A stretch of DNA of 64,000 bases. Origin: Oikopleura dioica. Its lineage: Eukaryota; Animalia; Chordata. The position numbers and the translations under genes are program-made. Positions 20,573 through 31,581 of the stretch are shown here, piece by piece; the first letter of the stretch is position 1; each line of letters begins with the position of its first letter. The notes beneath the pieces were generated by a model. That model saw only the letters and a list, made by a program, of their open reading frames with translations. It made no database searches and was not told the origin of the DNA. Location: positions 11,098,001-11,162,000 of the forward strand of contig OU015569.1 of the NCBI GenBank assembly GCA_907165135.1, given 5' to 3'.

Positions 20573-22892
20573 TTACAGATGCTCGGAAAACTGGCCAAAG
20601 TCGATTGTTGAGCGAGGCATGGACGTTTTAGCGTGAGTTGTTGTCTTTGAAGTGAGCAGATTTACGCCGCGCTTCAATTCTGCATCAGCAACTGGAGGGG
20701 CTTCGACGTCTTCGATGATGGTTTTTGGGAGTGTGTTGACTGGCTGCACCCAGTTTTTGGAAGACGTTTTTTTCTATTTGGAAATATTCGTTAGCCCTAA
20801 ATCCTTCGTTATTCTACCTTTTTCCAAAAATACGCGGCAGCAGCAATAGCGCCGAGAACAATGATCCCGCCACCTCCAGCAGCGCCGTAGACAATCACAG
20901 ATTTGCTGAATCCAGATGATGAATTGTTATTCGTCGTGTTCTGAGATGTTTCGTTGGAAAAGCTGGAACTGATGCTGCTAGAAGTGTCTTCAGATTCTTC
21001 AGAAATAGGCTGGTCGCAGAGGAATCCTTCCCAGCCAAGGCAGAAGCAGGTGAACTCGAGTTGACGGGATTCGCATGCGCCTCCGTTTCGGCAAGGGTTG
21101 GGCTGACACGGGTCGCGGACTTGAAAAAAGGGATTGGTTTTTCAGAATAAACTAGAAAATGCAAACTTGTTTGGCAGCGAGGACCAGAAAAACCAGCGGG
21201 GCAGATACAGTCAAAATTGTTCAATCTAAAATCGTAATAAATAATGAGATCATCTCTTGAAAATAACTAACCTATCAATGCATTGGCCCCCATTTTCGCA
21301 CAAATTTATACGGCAGTTATCTTCATTCGTTTCGCAAAACGGGCCCACAAAGCCAGGAACGCATTGGCATGAAAAATCATCGTCTCCGACTCCAAGTGCT
21401 GTGCAGTAAAATCAAAGTTCAACAACGATTGAAAAAAAGGAAAGACAAAAGCTTTCGAACTTTTACTGAGCGCCGTTTTGGCAAGGCGAGTTTGAGCAGG
21501 GATCGGAGCCAATTTCGCAGAAATCGCCAGAGTAGCCGTCAGTGCAGAAACAAATCACATCGCCTCCTCCTAAATCGAGGCATTCAGCCCCATTCTGGCA
21601 TGGTTCACTGGAACAGCCAGCACTTTCGCCAGAGGTGATTTCGTATCGAAGTCGAAAGCCGAGGTATGCATCCCCAGCGTCACTTTGGAAAACGATCTGA
21701 ACGGAGCCAGTTGTTGTCAATTGCCCGCTTCTATTTTCGCCAAAGTTTCGGGATGTCCGGCCACAGTATCGTTCTGTAAATGTCGAAGTCTGCAACTCTA
21801 CATAATCAAAGAGACATCCTTGAGCAGGCTCGACGTTGAATCCTTCCGCGCTGATTGTTACAGTATCTAAGAACAGTCATTTCCGATCAAAGTTTTAAAT
21901 CAATAATTGTTTCCGCCTGCGCCGCCAAAAGCTGACTTCTTTGACCATCTGAAAGCGCCAGATGGCAATTTTTGAACATATAAGTCGACAAAAAGTAAGC
22001 CAAAGACCAGTTATTAAAATGAACACAAAAATGAAGAAAAATTTATTATAGCGAAATTCTTTATTTTCGGTATAATAAACTTTTATTAATATTTTGATTA
22101 CAGTGGCATGCGCGGGTTCCGCCCTATCAAATTCACAGCGGAGAATTTCATGGAAACCGAAGAATTTACCTATTATTTATCCCAAAAACACCTGCTTTCT
22201 TGATCTCAATCCCTTATTTATTCTGGTGATATCTTGTTTTTTTAACTTGAAGAATACATATAAATATATGCAGTAATAAACCTCTTGACAATTACATCAT
22301 GCATTTTTTAAACATCTTGTTCATGATCTTGTCTTTTCATATGAATTCAGATTATAGCCCATCAGTGATGTCCAGGTCCACCACTACCTAAGATGGGCTT
22401 CAAAAACTTACGAACTATTCTTTAGTTCCTTTCACTCATGATATCAATGTGACCATTGATACTGACAGTTACTGACAGTAATTCCCTAAACGATCATCAT
22501 CGTAACATGCATAGTGCAAGTTGAAGGTCAACCAATCAAAAAAGACCCAATTAGTCAAACGAGTCTGACAGTTATGGTTCCTAAATTTCATTAGAATTTC
22601 GACTCGAAAAGTTTGGGGCTAATGATAAGCACGAAAAAAGGCATTTATAGAGCGATTTCTGGACCAATCACGCGGCTCGATGAAACTGATCGTTATTTGG
22701 GGGTCGGTCGGTAGAAAAAAAAATACCTGTAGGAGAAGCTCCAATAATCCAGCTGCATTGGAAATTATTCGGATAGGGAGTCGGATAATTCGGCGATTGA
22801 ATGAATCCAACAGGCTCTGTCAGTCTTGATCCGCATTCCTGAGCGGAAACGAAATATAGAAAAAGTAAAAATCGGCGTTTTGAAACTTTCAT
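20573..22892 (-). CDS. Type I membrane protein: signal peptide, CUB, four EGF repeats, TM, cytoplasmic tail
   Basis: CGSRLTEPVGFIQSPNYPTPYPNNFQCSW and GCLFDYVEL...RYCG, EGF repeats, TM VIVYGAAGGGGIIVLGAIAAAAYFW. Confidence 0.88.
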
Positions 22893-23109
22893 TCGACGTT
22901 CTCTTTGAATGAAACTTTTGACTTGTTTTCGTCATTCTGAAAGGTACAGGGCCACTTTGGCCGACATCTCGGAAGTAATCGGACTCGTCCGTTCTCAGCC
23001 TATTAATTTAATAAACGCACAAACAAAGCAGGACAAGCAATGACGCTTGAATCCACTTGAGTGTTTCAACTCGAGTTAATCAAATCGAAACAATAAGAAG
23101 GGTCGCTTT

Positions 23110-25841
23110 TTAATTTATTCCGTAAAAGTCAGTAGAAAACCAGATATCCAGAACAAAGCGGTCTTCGAAGTTTTCTGTGTTGAATCGCGTGAATCGGCCG
23201 CAGCGGAAAAGACTGAAGTCCTTGTGATCTGAACGAGTTAATCATAAGAACAGTCATTTTATCTTATCACTTACCAGTAAAAAACGAAACTCTATGATTT
23301 TGCAGCTCGCTTGGGCCGCAAGTATTTGCTTTCTTGTTTTTGTTGTGGCAGTCAAAAATGTCCCCGTCGTAGAGATAAATGTTCGAGTACTGAGTGAAGC
23401 CCATCGGCTCGCTTGAGCTCTTAGAGTAGTACCAGAAGTAGCTGCTTCCTTCTACTGGCAGAGCTTGTTCGGTGACTGGGAAATTGGATTAAAATTGGGC
23501 TTGAGTTCTTTGAATTAACCTTTGCAGTAAGGTTTGCACGCGTTGGCGCAGAAACGTCTGCAGCTAGACTCGCACTGCTGCTGGCAAGTCTTGTACTTCG
23601 GAAGCGATTCCATTTTTTCCCACTGTTTAATCGTTGCTTCGTCTCTGTTGCATTCTTGCTCACATCGAGGAGGGCACAAAGTTTCTTTACACTCAACAAT
23701 GTCAGGCTCCTTTTCGCACTCTTTCAAGCACTCGTGGTCAAGCTAAAATGGCAGATAATTATGAGCGATTGAAAATTCTGAAAATATTTACCTTAGTTTT
23801 TCTACTGAAAACAGTCTGATTGAACAAGACATTGATCGGACCAACCACTCCTGCTCTGTACTTTTCATCCCCTTCTTCTTTGCAGCCGACGAAAAGCGTT
23901 GTCGTATTCGGATTTGGAGGTTCTAGGAAGCGCCAGATAGAAGGAGTTCTTCCTTTGTAGGAGAAATACTTTTCAAAACCGTTGGAGCTTTTTCACGAGT
24001 CATGAAACAACCTTCTTTTTTCAACGATTTTGATAATCCTTCTTTTGAGCTTATGAGATAAATTTTCAACTCGGTCCTGAGAAGATAGTCATTGACATGG
24101 TTGATCATGACGTCATCGCGGAGAACATAGGGAGTTGTCGTCGTTGTTGTAGTTGTAGTAGTTGTGGTCGTTGTGGTCGTCGTAGTAGTTGTCGTAGTAG
24201 TAGTCGTTGTCGTAGTCGTTGTCGTAGTTGTCGTCGTGGTGGTCGTCGTTGTAGTTGTGGTAGTCGTTGTGGTGGTAGTCGTCGTTGTCGTAGTTGTGGT
24301 AGTTGTAGCGTCGAAATCAGCACATGGGCAAAGATGGAGACAAAAGGGAAAATCCGCATAGGCACATTTATCTCGACATTGCTCCTCGCCATTTCCTTTA
24401 TTGTGGCAGACTTGGAGGCAATGGAGAAACTCTTCGTAGCAAGTTCTTTTGCAAGCGCGGATTTCGTAGTAATGCTTTTCTTCGCAGCTTAGCGGCGGTT
24501 TTGTAGTTGTTGTCGTCGTAGTTGTCGTTGTAGTAGCTGTGGTCGTTATGGTCGTTGTTTTTGTAGTTGTAGTCGTCGTGGTAGTGGTCGCAGGAGGCGC
24601 GCAAGGGCAGTTTTTAACGAGGCAGTTGTAATGATCCTGCATCAAACATTTTTCAGTGCATTTTTCATCGTGCTTTGGACATTTTAGCATGCACGTTCCA
24701 ACATCTTCCCAGCAATCGTGTTTGCACTTTTTCATTTCTTGAGCATGTTTCTCTTCGCAAGAAACCGGCTTCTTCGGGCCACACTTGTAATACAACGGAT
24801 TTGGACAAGGACAGCCCTTTGGACAATTGTGCTCGCAGGGACATTCGTTTTCGCAAAGTGTCAAGCGATAGTCGCAGTTGTTTTCGCAAGTCATTTTTCG
24901 CCCGCAAGTTGAGTGGCATTTTTCATGAAGCGCTTTGCAAAAAGACTTGCATTTTTTATTCTCTAATTTTGAAAAATCATCGCAGTGGCCATTATGATGA
25001 CCTTGTGGCGATCTTGTTGTTGTCCTTCGCGTCGTGGTTGTTCTTTTCGTCGTTGTAGTTTTCTTTGTTGTGGTTGTTGGCGTCGTTGTTGAGCGATAAA
25101 CAGTTGTCGTCCAAGCATAAGTAGTGTACTCTGTTGGTCTTGGTCGCGTCCAAGTCCACGGCCCCTTCAAAAGTTGCGAATTTTCGGAGCTAGGTTATTC
25201 TATAAACAACAGCAGTAAGTAGTGATACCGATGATAGCAGACTCAAATCCGGGGTTACGCCGCCACTAAGAGAATCCTGTCTTGTGATTGGCTGACCGGA
25301 TAACCTGTTCGCCATCCGTGGCGAACAGCTTCAAATCCCGGACAAAGGCCTGCTATCATCGTTACTTTCGTTGTTATTCTAGTTTGTTATCCTGAGAAAT
25401 CCAAAGAATTATGACCAGATCGCGGTCAATCATGAGTAGTTTTTAAAAGTATAAAATGCCAGAACGGACTCATTTTCTGTCAATCTATAAAATGCTGAAC
25501 TGTATACTTGACGATGATCGATATATACATCTTTCAACGAAAATAAATGAAACTAAGAGACGTTTTGTTTTGATTTTCTTACAAGAGATAAATGATACTT
25601 TGAATATGTAAGCTACAGACTCCGAAAACGAATGTCTTGCTTTTCATTTCAGAGAAATTTGCAACTTTGGTTCCTTAGTTTTGTCCGGCGCTTTGGTTTT
25701 ATTCGGATCTCTAGTTTTGTTCGGGTCTCGAGTCTTGTTCGGATTTTTCGTCTTATTTGGATTTCCGGTCGGAGCTGTTCCCCCGTGCCAGGCGCTAACG
25801 GACACCAAAAATGGCAGAAAAATAGAAAATGTCGGTTTCAT
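23110..25841 (-). CDS. Secreted Cys-rich poly-Thr mucin/oikosin-like protein; exon 25841-~25664 is the probable first exon
   Basis: Repeated C..C...C...CPC modules, CPCEHNCPKGCPC, and a run of more than 50 Thr. The signal-peptide exon joins in phase 2 to the acceptor at ~25196. Further exons run to the stop at 23110. Confidence 0.72.
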
Positions 25842-26187
25842 TTTCTCTCCTCTGACCCGTCTCTCGCTACTGAAGAAGTTGAAAGAGTTAGAAGTGAGTA
25901 CTAGCTAACAGTCAGCTGAAGATGAAGTTGTTCGACAACGCAGCTGTTTGTCGAGAGCGCGTGTCCGAGACACCGTCTGAGATGTTGGCCATCTTCCGGT
26001 CCGAAGTGATAGAATTAGAATCAGACAGTTATCTGTCCGATTTCAGTATCTACTATTCAATAATTTTTTCTAACTTACGTGGATTGGCTTCATTTAGCGC
26101 CCTCCGCCGCGCAGTTTTCTCAAATGAGCGTGAAATTAGTGATGCGCAGCTACAAAACGACCTCGAAATCGAGCACCTTAATTCAGT

Positions 26188-26280
26188 ACTCATCCCATTT
26201 TTGAGTCCGATTTCGATTGTCTAACAGGTAGGAATCGTAGCCAAGCCTTCTCTCTCTTCCCTCTCGCCTCTCAAAATTCA
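26188..26280 (+). ncRNA. SL RNA: Spliced-leader (SL) RNA gene; 40-nt exon 26188-26227 followed by a GT donor; 3' end uncertain
   Basis: ACTCATCCCATTTTTGAGTCCGATTTCGATTGTCTAACAG|GTAGGAATCG matches the known O. dioica leader. Hairpins ACTCA/TGAGT and CGATTTC/GGAATCG, the latter spanning the donor. Confidence 0.92.
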
Positions 26281-26449
26281 CGAAGCGGTCCGAACTTGCA
26301 GTTTTTCAGTAAATAAACGAATTTAACTATAAATAGACATAAAAAACGACTTCGGAAGTTTTTTCTTTTGAAGAACTAAGTAGTACAGTAAAGAACAGTT
26401 TGTACCACAGACTGCAAGTACGAAAAACTAGTGTATTTTCGGCAAAACA

Positions 26450-26521
26450 AGGCGAGACCGGGGTTCGAACCCGGGACCCCTTCATTACGAGTGAAGTGCT
26501 CTACCACTGAGCTAACCCGCC
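26450..26521 (-). tRNA. trnT-CGT: tRNA-Thr(CGT)
   Basis: Cloverleaf GGCGGGT-TA-GCTC-AGTGGTA-GAGC-A-CTTCA-CTCGTAA-TGAAG-GGGTC-CCGGG-TTCGAAC-CCCGG-TCTCGCC-T. A and B boxes, T4 terminator, one T7:T66 mismatch. Confidence 0.93.
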
Positions 26522-28664
26522 CTTGTCTCCCTCAAATCACGGTTTCATTATGAAATTCTCACTTTCGCGCCTTCCCAATCGTCAATTTTACCCTCCACTC
26601 TATCTACGTGACGAAAGTTCCCAGTAAATTCAGTAAAAAGACAGTAAGAAATGTAGCACCATCGATGATAGTGCTGTCCATTGAATGATGATGTACAGTG
26701 GTTCATTTTATAATTAATAAATTCATTAATTAATGACTTGATTGGAAAAAAAATCTCTAAAATGATGATTCGACACTCCAATTTACCAGTTACTGTATAT
26801 CAGATACAGTATATTTTTCATTTTAAACGATCTTGGAGCTCTACCAAAGTTGTCTTGATGTTTTAAGAGAGAAGACAATAATCTAGGAAGACAATTGAAA
26901 GGCAGGGCCCTTAATAAGATAGGAAGATGATTTATGGGGAACTTTGTGCCGATTGGAAATTGATTAAAAACTTCGTCTTCGGAGGATAATTACATCGATC
27001 TAAGCGGGGCTTATTAGAGAGCTATTCCAAGTGAAGTGAAGGGCACGCTGCCGAAGATACCTCGCAGAAGATAGAACACTCGCTGAAGCATAAGTTCAAC
27101 TGTCAAAGTATCGAGGAAGAATGATCATAGACCTGGCTACTCAGGTACAGTCGAAATCCAACTTGAATTTAGAGACAAAAAAGAGAGCCCTTTTTGATGA
27201 GATTCTAGTTTGGAATTTCTAGAGACTATTTTTGAAGACCATAATTCTTGTGAAAACACCCCCAGATTGATATATAATTTACAAATGGCAGTCGAGAATA
27301 TACGTAAATTTGTATAAAGAACTGGAATTAAAAGCTGAGTTGATATTTCTAGCGTGATCGTAGATAACTAAAAAACATGATTAATTTAGAGACACATCGA
27401 CAGGGAATCCGTTTTCTTCTACATTTGCGTCATTATTGTTGGATGCTCGGCAGTTTGGGGATGCGTTGCTTACACCATTTTTTGCATTTGGTATCACATG
27501 ATTAAACACAAAGTAAGACCATTTTGGTGCTTAGAGAAATGAATTATTGAAGTACCTTTTCGATTTCGGATATCACGATGACAATCAAAAAGCGATGATA
27601 AAGAAGCAGGCCAAGCTAATAGAAAAAGAACCAGGAAAAGTCCTAGGTAAGAACTTCTTGTGCTTTTAAAATGCCGGTATTTCGATGGCACTTTTGATCC
27701 GCCGAAATACTTGAAAGTAGGGGCATCAAAGATCAAATTTGGCGCAACTGCTATCCAGCTGTTTCTATGGAATATAAAGCCGAAAAACGGAATAGATATT
27801 CATAAAATGAAACAAAAAAAAGGTCAAACGTTTTCTGAATAAAATTCTCGAATGTTTTTATCATTTTTCTTGTGATTTTCTTTTGACTTGACTTGAATCT
27901 GACCATAAAAAATATACATTTTTACTTCTAAATCGATTTTCATCGCAAATTCTTCCTAAATTAGAAATTCTAGTGTCGCTCTTTAACATTTCAATTTAGT
28001 TTGTTAAATATGGTTGGTCTATATAATGTATATAATTTTCTGTTTTAAGCTCATCCTCGGGCGGCAGTAGTGATTCCCCTAACCCCTCATATTGGAATGA
28101 AGAGAAAGTTCGAGAACGGAAACGACATGGCGAAAAAACTCGAGGGAGATGTAGACGGCGGTTTTGAGCGATCAGAAATGGTTGCTTGATGCTGCTTGAA
28201 TTCTGCTTTTGAACAAATGAATAAACAAACAGAGTAGTTTTTAATTTAAAGCATGATGCTTTATGAGCTTTATTTTCAATTGAAATTTTCAAGTGTTGAA
28301 ACGATGACCAGTGGACTGTTGAAAGTTCAATCTCGACAGTGGATTTTTTTATTTCTCAGGCAGTACACGATGATTTTTATTTCGCGTTGTGTTTTAGTTA
28401 CAGAAGTGTTGTTTTCTTTTTATATTAGCTTTGTTACAAAATTCACAGAATCATTTGCATTTACGGAGTCGTTTTTTAGTTACGGAATACCTCGAAAGAT
28501 AGCGTTGTGTTTAGCAAGTACAGTAGTTTCTCGTTCTCTCCTTTTCTGTTTAAAAAAGAGTTGTTATTTTTAAAAATAGGGTCAAGCTGGTACAGAAATT
28601 GTAGATTTTAGTTTTCGTTGTTGCATTTTTGAACGTTTTTCTTTTTAGTTTTGAGTTTGATAAG

Positions 28665-31581
28665 TTAGACTTGCGTGCCGTAGAAACTGAAATTGTGGCT
28701 GCTGAAATTCTGATGCGTTCTGTGCGGCGAGGGCTTGTGGTGGTGCTGATGGTGGTTTGAGTTGTTAGTTGAGTTGTGATTGCTGCGGCCGGGGCGCTGT
28801 TCTTGACGCTTGACTGGCGAGAAGTTAGCGTTTTCGACCAGCGGTTTGCGATGATTGTGACTTCCTCCGCTGCGGTTTTGGTTGCGCCCGGGGTAGAATT
28901 TTACGTCCCAGTCGGACATGGCGCCACGGTCGTCTTGGATCACAGAAGCCGTCACTAAAAGACAGTTAAGACAATGGAGAATACTAGCGACTACCTGGTA
29001 GAGGTCCGACCATGCCCGCTTCTTCCAAATCTGTGGCAATTGCTCTTTCTATTCTATCGCGTCTTCTTCTCCTCGCGTTCCCGGAATTGACCCGCCCGGT
29101 CGAACCGTATTGGGAGCTTTGTTGATGGCGTTTCTGCTTTTGCCTAGTTTTTTTTTTGTTTTAAAAAGTCGCGTTTTTAATGATTATTGTCTTACCTTGT
29201 CGTTGCTAGTGGATTTCCCTTCGTCGTGACTTCGACAAAAGCAAGGTCTTCGATGCCGTTTTGTCCGGGCTCGATCAGTTCCTGGATTTGGTCAAGAAAA
29301 GGAAGGGAAGAAAAAGGGTACCTTTTCGATGTTCTTCCAAAGCTCAGTTTTCGCTTCTTGGTCAGCTCTTTTTGAACGGGCAGGGACTTGGAACGCGCTC
29401 GATGGAAATTGCGGCTGGACGAGTTTCTCTGTTGAAGCTCGAGCGTTTTTGCTAAGAAGGGATTCAGGTAAAGCGCCAACTGAAATTTAAAAGAGCTAAC
29501 CTCAAGTGAGGATCATTTCTGATCGCTTCCGTGTCCGTCATTGCATTTCGCACTCGCTCGCGTCTTCGCATTCTCTTTCTTCGCGAATCCACTTCGGACT
29601 CGTCTCCAGATGTCTTCGCTCCTGAAAGTCGAACTTATGAAAATGTCTTTCTGACTTGATTGAATCTGGCGGGCGGAATTTATTTGCCCGTAAAAAGAGG
29701 TCAGCTGGTCATAGAGCAAATTGACTTTTAGACAGCTGGAATACTGCTCTCTTCACTTTTTTCACTTTCAATATTCAAGACAGAAGAGAAAAACTACTGT
29801 ACCTCTTTCTCTACTGGCTCTTCTTCGTCCTTTAGCGGGTGGGAAACGGCTAACTGATCCAGTCGTCGTTCGCCCGGCCACGGATTCGACATCGCTTTAA
29901 AAATATGTAATTTTTTGAACAAGTGTTTGTTTTTACCTCTTGTCGGTGAACATTCCCAGCTCGCGTTTGCTCGCTCGTTGAGATTGATTTGAACGGTCGA
30001 AGTTGTTCTGGAGGGAGTATTTTGACGCATCACGGTCGTGTTCTCGCTCTTTGTAGTGCCTTTAGGAAAAGAGTACTGTTAATACTGTAAATACTCAAAG
30101 AAGAGCTTGACAAAAGGTTAACCCTCGGCATGGCGATCCGAGTCAGACCCTAGAAGTGCTTAAATGAAAAGCCGCACAGCGTCTTATATTAAATCGAAGC
30201 CGCCAAGATTAAGGATTCATCTTCATAAAGTTCCTAAAACGTAGCTGACAGTACCTGAATAGACTGTGATGACCCGTCGCTTGCTGAAAAAGCGCTTTGC
30301 ACGAAGCTCTATCGATCGTCTTTGCGGGCATGATCATCCCGTTCTGACTGCGCAGCTCAAACGTCTTTTCGCGATAATCGAGTTGTGTGATGTGTCGCCA
30401 GCGGAAAAACTGACTCTGAATTGAATTCTTTGAAGAAAGCGAGCTTTTACACGGCTAGGCCGGAATCGAGAGTGTTTGACTGTTCAATAAGTTTCACTTT
30501 GGAAAAGAAAGAGAATTCCATTTGAGAATTTGGAAAACGCAAATTTATCGTTCTGTCCAAAATTGACGACTAATTCGCCAAGATTGTCGATAAATCTGTA
30601 GAAGTTAGAATCTTGGAATTTCGGACTGAGAAATTTTCAGGTTTCGAATACAAGAAGCTATAATTATTATTACTAACCTGTCCGTCTTCTGGGTTGCCGA
30701 GGCGTATCTCAAGTCCCCGTGCACTAAGAATCGCTTCTCCTTCTTTCGTCGATCCGGCGAGTGGCTGCAGTCTGAAGCGCTGTTCTCCATATTTCTCCAA
30801 CTTCCTGGCTCTCCACAAGAAGCGTTGTTCGGATTCCTGTCGGCTCAGTTGGACCAGTTGGCGGTGACACGTTTTCACTTCTTCTATCCATCCTTTTGGC
30901 ACTTGTCGTGGGACGAGTTTCAGTTGGTCGTATTCGCCGTCTTTGATGTTTCCGTAATCGCCCTGTTCTGCCTGGGCGGCGTAAGCAGCTAGTTCCGCTG
31001 CAGCGTCGTCGGTAGCGTCAAGATCGCCGTTTAGCAAATCAGAGCGAATTTGAAGATAGAGCCAGTGCCTCGCCGCTTCTTCTTTCAATCGCTGCGGATC
31101 GGGCGGGTAGTAGCGAACTCGGAACTTGAGCGCTGGTTTCTGCTGATTCTGCGCAGTTTTGGGTAGTTGCTCGTAAAGAGTCCGATTCGGGTCCAAGTAG
31201 TGGTCGCAGCCGCCTTTGCCCTTGTAAGCGAGGCCGAAGAACTCACCCTCCCGCTTCAGTCGTAAATGGTCAACTGCAGAAGTTATCAGCTGACGGGTTC
31301 GCGCCGTTCGCTACAAAACGGATCGTTCGAAAATTGATAAAATAGATATTCAAAAAAGATATTTCCAAAATTTCATTTTTCGAAATAGTTGTGAATTTTT
31401 CTTGAATTTGGTAAATTTTAAAGAGGATTTCCGAATTAAAATTAGCTCGTGGCGGATTAAACTGGCGCGATAAACAGGTGCTTACCGAATAAGTGATGGT
31501 GAGCCTTGAAGAGTCGGGAAACTTGATTTCTACGGCGACGGTGCGTTTCGCTGCTCCAAAGCAGCCAGTCAGCCATGACAT
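28665..31581 (-). CDS. Band 4.1/FERM-domain protein (EPB41L4-like) with C-terminal PDZ-binding motif TQV
   Basis: EFFGLAY...HYLDPNRTLYEQL, LKFRVRYYPPDP.RLKEE, LYLQIRSDLLNG, C-lobe FRWRHITQLDYREKTF. Confidence 0.9.

Follow-up and report, generated by a model that had tools for sequence, protein, structure and literature searches.

Oikopleura dioica has been described as having a single spliced leader (SL), the length of which is 40 nt (PMC1488885). The 5S rRNA genes of this species were found to be 'frequently associated' with an SL gene (PMC8008620), and the same source presents the canonical 5S/SL cassettes as inverted repeats. Since the whole 5S/SL pair served as the query in that work, single SL copies would be missed by the published count. 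A comparable organisation is known from the nematode Caenorhabditis briggsae, in which SL1 resides in the 5S rDNA repeat and the SL2-type genes are dispersed (PMC7986045). The likeness of O. dioica to the nematode consists in the occurrence, within one organism, of 5S-linked clustered SL genes and of dispersed SL genes with promoters of their own, presumed as such in O. dioica; however, the dispersed nematode genes encode other leaders and have a specialised function in operons, whereas the exon of the dispersed O. dioica gene studied here is the same as that of the clustered ones.

The gene under study lies in the genome of O. dioica of the Okinawa lineage (assembly of 64.28 Mb, i.e., 64.3 Mb, in 19 contigs). 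The window, that is, the whole stretch of DNA analysed, comprises 64 kb (C2:11098001-11162000), and the positions given below without a contig prefix are counted from its first nucleotide. The features are as follows:

26092-26187, plus strand: upstream block (-96 to -1), the presumed promoter, common to all SL RNA genes in the alignment of 55 copies
26146-26176, plus strand: core promoter-like element of 31 nt (-42 to -12), the best-conserved upstream part
26188-26227, plus strand: spliced-leader exon of 40 nt, equal to the family consensus (0/40 differences, 55 copies)
26228-26275, plus strand: SL RNA intron half of ~48 nt, with 9/46 window-specific changes
26208-26237, plus strand: predicted donor-spanning hairpin (RNA positions 21-50, ViennaRNA)
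26449-26522, minus strand: tRNA-Thr(CGT), predicted by ARAGORN and by Rfam (64 bits, threshold 29, E 1.4e-11)

The full 40-nt leader with a GT donor, noticed earlier in a sequence-only reading of the locus, was confirmed, the donor dinucleotide following the exon directly at 26228-26229. The upstream block opens with an AGCGCCC box (26096-26102), and its core element is identical at 29 of 31 positions, with 2/31 differences, when set against any other copy. A T5 run (26198-26202) is contained in the exon within the AU5G motif at 26197-26203. The intron half has both a pyrimidine-rich, diverged Sm-type tract (26247-26266, shortened here by a 2-nt deletion) and the YGCCTC block, with the invariant CCCTCTCGCCTCT block intact at 26259-26271; the states specific to this locus are G at 26231 (intron position +4, where A is usual elsewhere), AG at 26239-26240, A at 26244, the 2-nt deletion near 26257 and those of 26272-26276. 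In blast of 25000-27500, the matches between the window and the other SL loci all start at 26091-26096 and stay within 26091-26285; with the whole unit from -96 to ~+89 present inside these limits, the locus represents one complete promoter-plus-gene unit. The window copy is a real, intact-looking O. dioica SL RNA gene. Its reading as a fragment was ruled out by the presence of the whole promoter-plus-gene unit, and its reading as a retrocopy of a trans-spliced mRNA by the presence of both the SL intron half and the upstream block. The window span contains one SL site, with no second inverted SL copy nearby and no long inverted repeat around the gene. The tunicate SL RNA is not covered by any Rfam model, and the tRNA alone was found with Rfam, both at the gathering threshold and at E<=10.

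The place of this copy in the family was determined by a genome-wide census. The 25-mer core of the leader was found at 58 genome sites, whereas the reversed control pattern had none; the leader match is therefore not a matter of chance. The Rfam 5S model yielded 47 5S genes in the genome, and the loci were assembled into 30 islands and then annotated. SL RNA genes with an intron half account for 55 of the 58 sites. Of the other three, one is a leader fused to coding sequence (C4:14061054), one is a fragment of 25 nt, and one is a copy truncated at +36 by a repeat element. A same-strand 5S gene of at least 100 nt is located 208-425 nt upstream (median 258) in 41/55 copies, mostly arms of inverted pairs, the upstream-flank census taking in the SL copies other than C1:13736177. 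The canonical 5S is absent from 14/55 copies: nine of these sit inside 5S/SL clusters, including three in which the upstream 5S is represented by a 28-37-nt fragment only, and five are isolated (C1:2021266, C1:7555039, C1:10277242, C1:14176434 and the window copy). Among the isolated copies, C1:14176434 is clearly decayed (two exon changes and 15/48 intron changes), and no Rfam family was detected within 1.5 kb of the four copies other than that of the window.

The lack of a recognisable 5S gene in the flanks, as stated by the sequence-only reading, held at every level of search: no 5S rRNA gene is present in the whole 64-kb window at the Rfam gathering threshold, none was recovered from 24500-28000 at Rfam E<=10, and the relaxed blastn search of 22000-30000 for 5S remnants returned chance 7-11-mers alone. 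The window copy is free of 5S for 26 kb on its upstream side and for 37 kb on its downstream side, the furthest distance from 5S shown for any copy. The suggestion of a dispersed and possibly variant locus stood in that 5S is missing and the sequence is indeed a variant, with ~20% divergence outside the exon from each of the other copies and no close sister, but not in the implied singularity, since 14 of the 55 copies likewise lack the canonical 5S. For the 5S-less copies, a minority class, no explicit description was found in the literature consulted, but their occurrence is unsurprising.

In comparison with the canonical O. dioica inverted-repeat cassettes, as presented in PMC8008620, the window copy has the same exon, GT donor region, intron half and -96 to -1 block, but it has neither a 5S gene 208-425 nt upstream nor an inverted partner, shows no homology past ~190 bp, and at ~20% divergence is apparently outside the concerted evolution of the arms. 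The other 5S-less copies (among them C1:2021266, C1:7555039, C1:10277242 and C1:14488948 in the genome, and those on the environmental contigs L084, L095 and L110) likewise consist of the autonomous unit; they have kept the core element, lack an intact 5S, and differ from the window copy in that the latter alone has a tRNA neighbour.

Several sites of the census are of separate note. In the palindromic 5S-linked pair C4:11763805/11764532, counted among the 55, other sequence has taken the place of the core promoter and of the leader's first ~10 nt (6/40 differences in the exon, 12/33 in the core), and these are probably dead chimeric copies; they are flanked by an outer pair of intact SL copies with 5S on the wrong side. 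At C4:14061054-14061093 the full 40-nt leader is genome-encoded, with neither the upstream SL promoter nor the SL intron, and 3 bases further on an ATG begins an ORF whose start resembles a signal peptide. The site is a candidate for either a retrocopied trans-spliced mRNA or a gene with a built-in leader.

The alignment of all copies from -420 to +130 reveals conservation in two stretches, the 5S gene and the segment from ~-96 to ~+89, with a variable spacer between them. The latter, a unit of ~190 bp common to all copies, includes the 31-nt core at -42 to -12, the exon and the pyrimidine-rich intron half that ends in the invariant CCCTCTCGCCTCT block; beyond +89 the SL copies diverge freely. 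Uniform palindrome ends were not found among the loci, the arm lengths and outer limits varying from one locus to another, and the reading of the 5S/SL palindrome as a transposon was rejected on this ground. A MITE-like dispersed repeat of ~600-890 bp, with terminal inverted repeats of ~217 bp, is represented in the genome by over 150 matching pieces and occupies the central part of at least five 5S/SL palindromes. It occurs in the SL loci far more often than their tiny share of the genome would predict, and it interrupts three SL RNA genes, those of C2:5493491/5494523 at +73 and that of C4:12016045 at +36. Sites of this repeat include:

C2:5493564-5494450 (L054:1948-2834): MITE-like repeat
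C4:12014113-12016009: MITE-like repeat
C5:13102350-13103966: MITE-like repeat
C1:13724886-13726343: MITE-like repeat
C5:15481292-15483020: MITE-like repeat

The Sm-binding region and the RNA structure bear the characters of the family. According to PMC6053224, citing Ganot et al., the Sm site of the O. dioica SL RNA is strongly diverged and pyrimidine-rich, and its counterpart in the window is 26247-26266. The earlier remark that the intron half carries no canonical Sm site, the only A-U5-G being that of the exon, was correct as an observation; it does not describe a feature of this locus, because no canonical Sm site was found in the intron half of any genome copy or on the environmental contigs, and all copies share the same pyrimidine-rich tract, so the deviation is a known trait of the family. 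With ViennaRNA, a 5-bp hairpin within the exon and a hairpin across the donor are predicted, the latter having 7 bp in the window as compared with 6 bp in the consensus, due to an additional C-G pair formed by the G at +4. The donor-spanning hairpin of the sequence-only reading was thus recovered as a prediction, but it is modest: the folding energy gives z = -1.64 for the first 53 nt and ~0, no better than shuffles, for the whole RNA, and no compensatory changes or covariation occur when 15 diverse copies are folded to a consensus, so that the hairpins are predictions from folding energy.

For the estimation of constraint, the changes of the window copy were polarised by the consensus of 13 O. 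dioica-like environmental copies. The exon shows no window-specific change (0/40) and the core shows two (2/29); the counts are 8/30 for the distal block, 9/46 for the intron half and 3/7 for the spacer, or 20/83 for these three together. An unchanged exon has a binomial probability of 1.6e-5 under the pooled rate and of 1.7e-4 under the intron rate, and that of two or fewer changes in the core is 0.017 under the pooled rate. With so few changes in the exon and core as compared with 20/83 in the rest of the unit, the copy looks maintained and not decaying, and the pattern fits continued selection on the leader and core promoter, although the identity of the exon could be produced without selection at this locus by short-tract gene conversion from the ~50 other copies. 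At -96 to -79 the window has the states of the environmental consensus and not those of the main family in this genome; these older states indicate that the copy is old and has escaped homogenisation. The arms of the palindromes are 97-99% identical to each other.

Taken with the anatomy, this makes it likely that 26092-26275 is a complete, self-contained and probably active SL RNA gene with its own promoter, an old copy situated outside the palindromes. As an old copy of the Okinawa lineage lying apart from the 5S/SL palindromes, it would have escaped their homogenisation, and with the exon and core promoter kept it most likely still yields an SL RNA whose ordinary leader would be donated in trans-splicing. 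Against this explanation were counted the ~20% divergence outside the exon, the changed spacer before +1 (7 of the 11 nt preceding the start differ, including the usual CTTT), the 2-nt deletion in the tract and the G at +4. The same four points favour the reading of the copy as a dead relic, i.e., a fragment of a former 5S/SL cassette that has lost its 5S by rearrangement and decays slowly, its exon being intact by chance or by ectopic gene conversion; the evident decay of the isolated C1:14176434 lends this further credit, as do the 28-37-nt 5S fragments upstream of three other copies, which indicate that 5S loss by rearrangement does occur. However, the exon and core have stayed nearly free of changes while 20/83 accumulated elsewhere on the copy's own branch; the changes of the intron half fall mostly at positions that vary in the 5S-linked copies too, with the invariant blocks intact, and no remnant of 5S is present, the homology stopping exactly at the edges of the promoter-plus-gene unit. 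The relic is therefore considered unlikely.

The divergence of the intron half and the G at +4 might alternatively mark a specialised SL RNA isoform, in which the same leader is combined with another intron half and promoter and hence with another regulation or snRNP assembly. The GTAGG donor is found in 5/14 copies lacking the canonical 5S as compared with 1/41 copies having it, a skew that may merely mark an older subfamily, as the copies are not independent. This distribution, the lengthened donor-spanning stem and the status of the window copy as an old independent lineage would agree with an isoform; but two of the five +4 G copies are arms of one palindrome, the changes affect positions that are freely variable in the family, and the isolated copies share no derived signature, so that a specialised isoform appears very improbable. 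It is hardly more probable that the copies outside the 5S palindromes form a separately regulated class, with the same leader, an older promoter version and the longer donor stem brought about by +4 G; if they did, such copies could serve as a source of SL RNA in tissues or conditions that do not use the 5S-linked ones.

One marine metagenome scan with the leader-plus-GT pattern gave 39 contigs. About 13 of the 39 carry 5'-terminal matches resembling trans-spliced transcripts, and the others are genomic SL RNA genes. The core element is retained on the O. dioica-like contigs. Around 10 of the 14 O. dioica-like copies with at least 400 nt of upstream sequence have no 5S, a proportion that is probably inflated because copies with unique flanks assemble better than repeats. 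The contigs of other lineages show direct SL-5S tandem repeats of ~600-730 bp with a different upstream sequence. Three contigs (L091, L107 and L090) belong to an Oikopleura-like lineage with the same leader and a 5S 92% identical to that of this genome, arranged in tandem repeats and not in palindromes, with only a short CCTCGAAA-like motif kept upstream.

These data indicate that the 5S linkage is a matter of genome organisation and no requirement for an SL gene, since the 5S is missing from 14/55 genomic and ~10/14 environmental copies and the other isolated copies have no ncRNA neighbour. The window copy and the other isolated copies define the smallest natural Oikopleura SL RNA unit, of ~190 bp from -96 to ~+89. 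This unit is useful for annotation, because stand-alone copies are missed by queries with whole 5S/SL pairs, and may also be of use in the design of constructs for the expression of SL RNA or small RNAs. The diverged intron half offers a locus-specific tag by which the expression of dispersed copies may be followed. The picture of trans-splicing in O. dioica is not changed by the window copy, and the earlier interpretation of the locus as a whole was partly supported.

The convergent tRNA-Thr(CGT) near the SL gene, likewise pointed out from the sequence, was recovered by both ARAGORN and Rfam. It possesses a T4 terminator of its own (26444-26447, minus strand) and lies 222 nt past the end of the exon and ~175 nt past that of the conserved SL RNA body. 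It had been proposed that this gene plays the role of the Pol III neighbour, i.e., that tRNA-Thr replaces 5S in giving the Pol III/TFIIIC environment needed by the SL gene. The closeness of the two 3' ends is in line with this proposal, and the nearest neighbour is a Pol III gene (5S) in 41/55 copies. However, apart from the window copy, no tRNA was found beside SL genes in the fetched flanks of the 55 copies or on the 39 environmental contigs, and the survey of loci thus shows the SL-tRNA linkage to be a one-off and not the norm; the four other isolated copies do without any neighbour detectable by Rfam within 1.5 kb. The 5S invariably precedes the SL gene on its own strand, whereas the tRNA follows it and is convergent. 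It is essentially a single-copy gene, with one partial relative elsewhere in the genome; it belongs to no SL-associated repeat, and blast of its flanks against the other SL loci found nothing shared. The T5 run of the exon is, moreover, incompatible with Pol III read-through, and it argues against transcription of the SL gene by Pol III. The proposed neighbour role is thus not borne out, a substitution of 5S by the tRNA being extremely improbable, and the adjacency looks coincidental, the tRNA lying outside the SL unit.

A run of five T residues terminates Pol III in chordates. No T-run follows the conserved 3' end in the SL family, and the O. dioica SL RNA is reported by Ganot et al. (2004) to bear a trimethylguanosine cap and to associate with Sm proteins. 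The exon T5, the missing 3' T-run and the reported cap together point to transcription by Pol II, starting from the upstream block of the gene itself. For the likely self-contained gene of the window, transcription would most probably start from this block by a Pol II route of the snRNA type, in which case neither the 5S nor the tRNA neighbour would be needed. The snRNA-type route is not demonstrated, as the local alignment scores of the SL upstream block against the upstream regions of five U2 snRNA genes fall within the shuffled range, i.e., there is no significant similarity to the U2 promoters; the idea of a shared snRNA promoter, raised by short common boxes seen by eye, was dropped after these scores. 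The genome contains seven U2 genes (the L077-L080 and L069 loci), and the upstream regions read for six of these (five distinct) have in common an ACCATAAMG-like box at ~-55; two U2 genes flank the 5S/SL palindrome C5:15481189/15483192.

On its upstream side, the SL gene of the window is adjoined by an ORF of 415 codons (23926-25170, minus strand) with long poly-Thr runs between Cys-rich modules. Among seven neighbouring ORFs searched with Pfam, this Thr-rich protein alone had a match, a weak one to New_glue (E 2.5e-5, below the cut-off), and the product looks like a mucin- or house-protein-like secreted protein.
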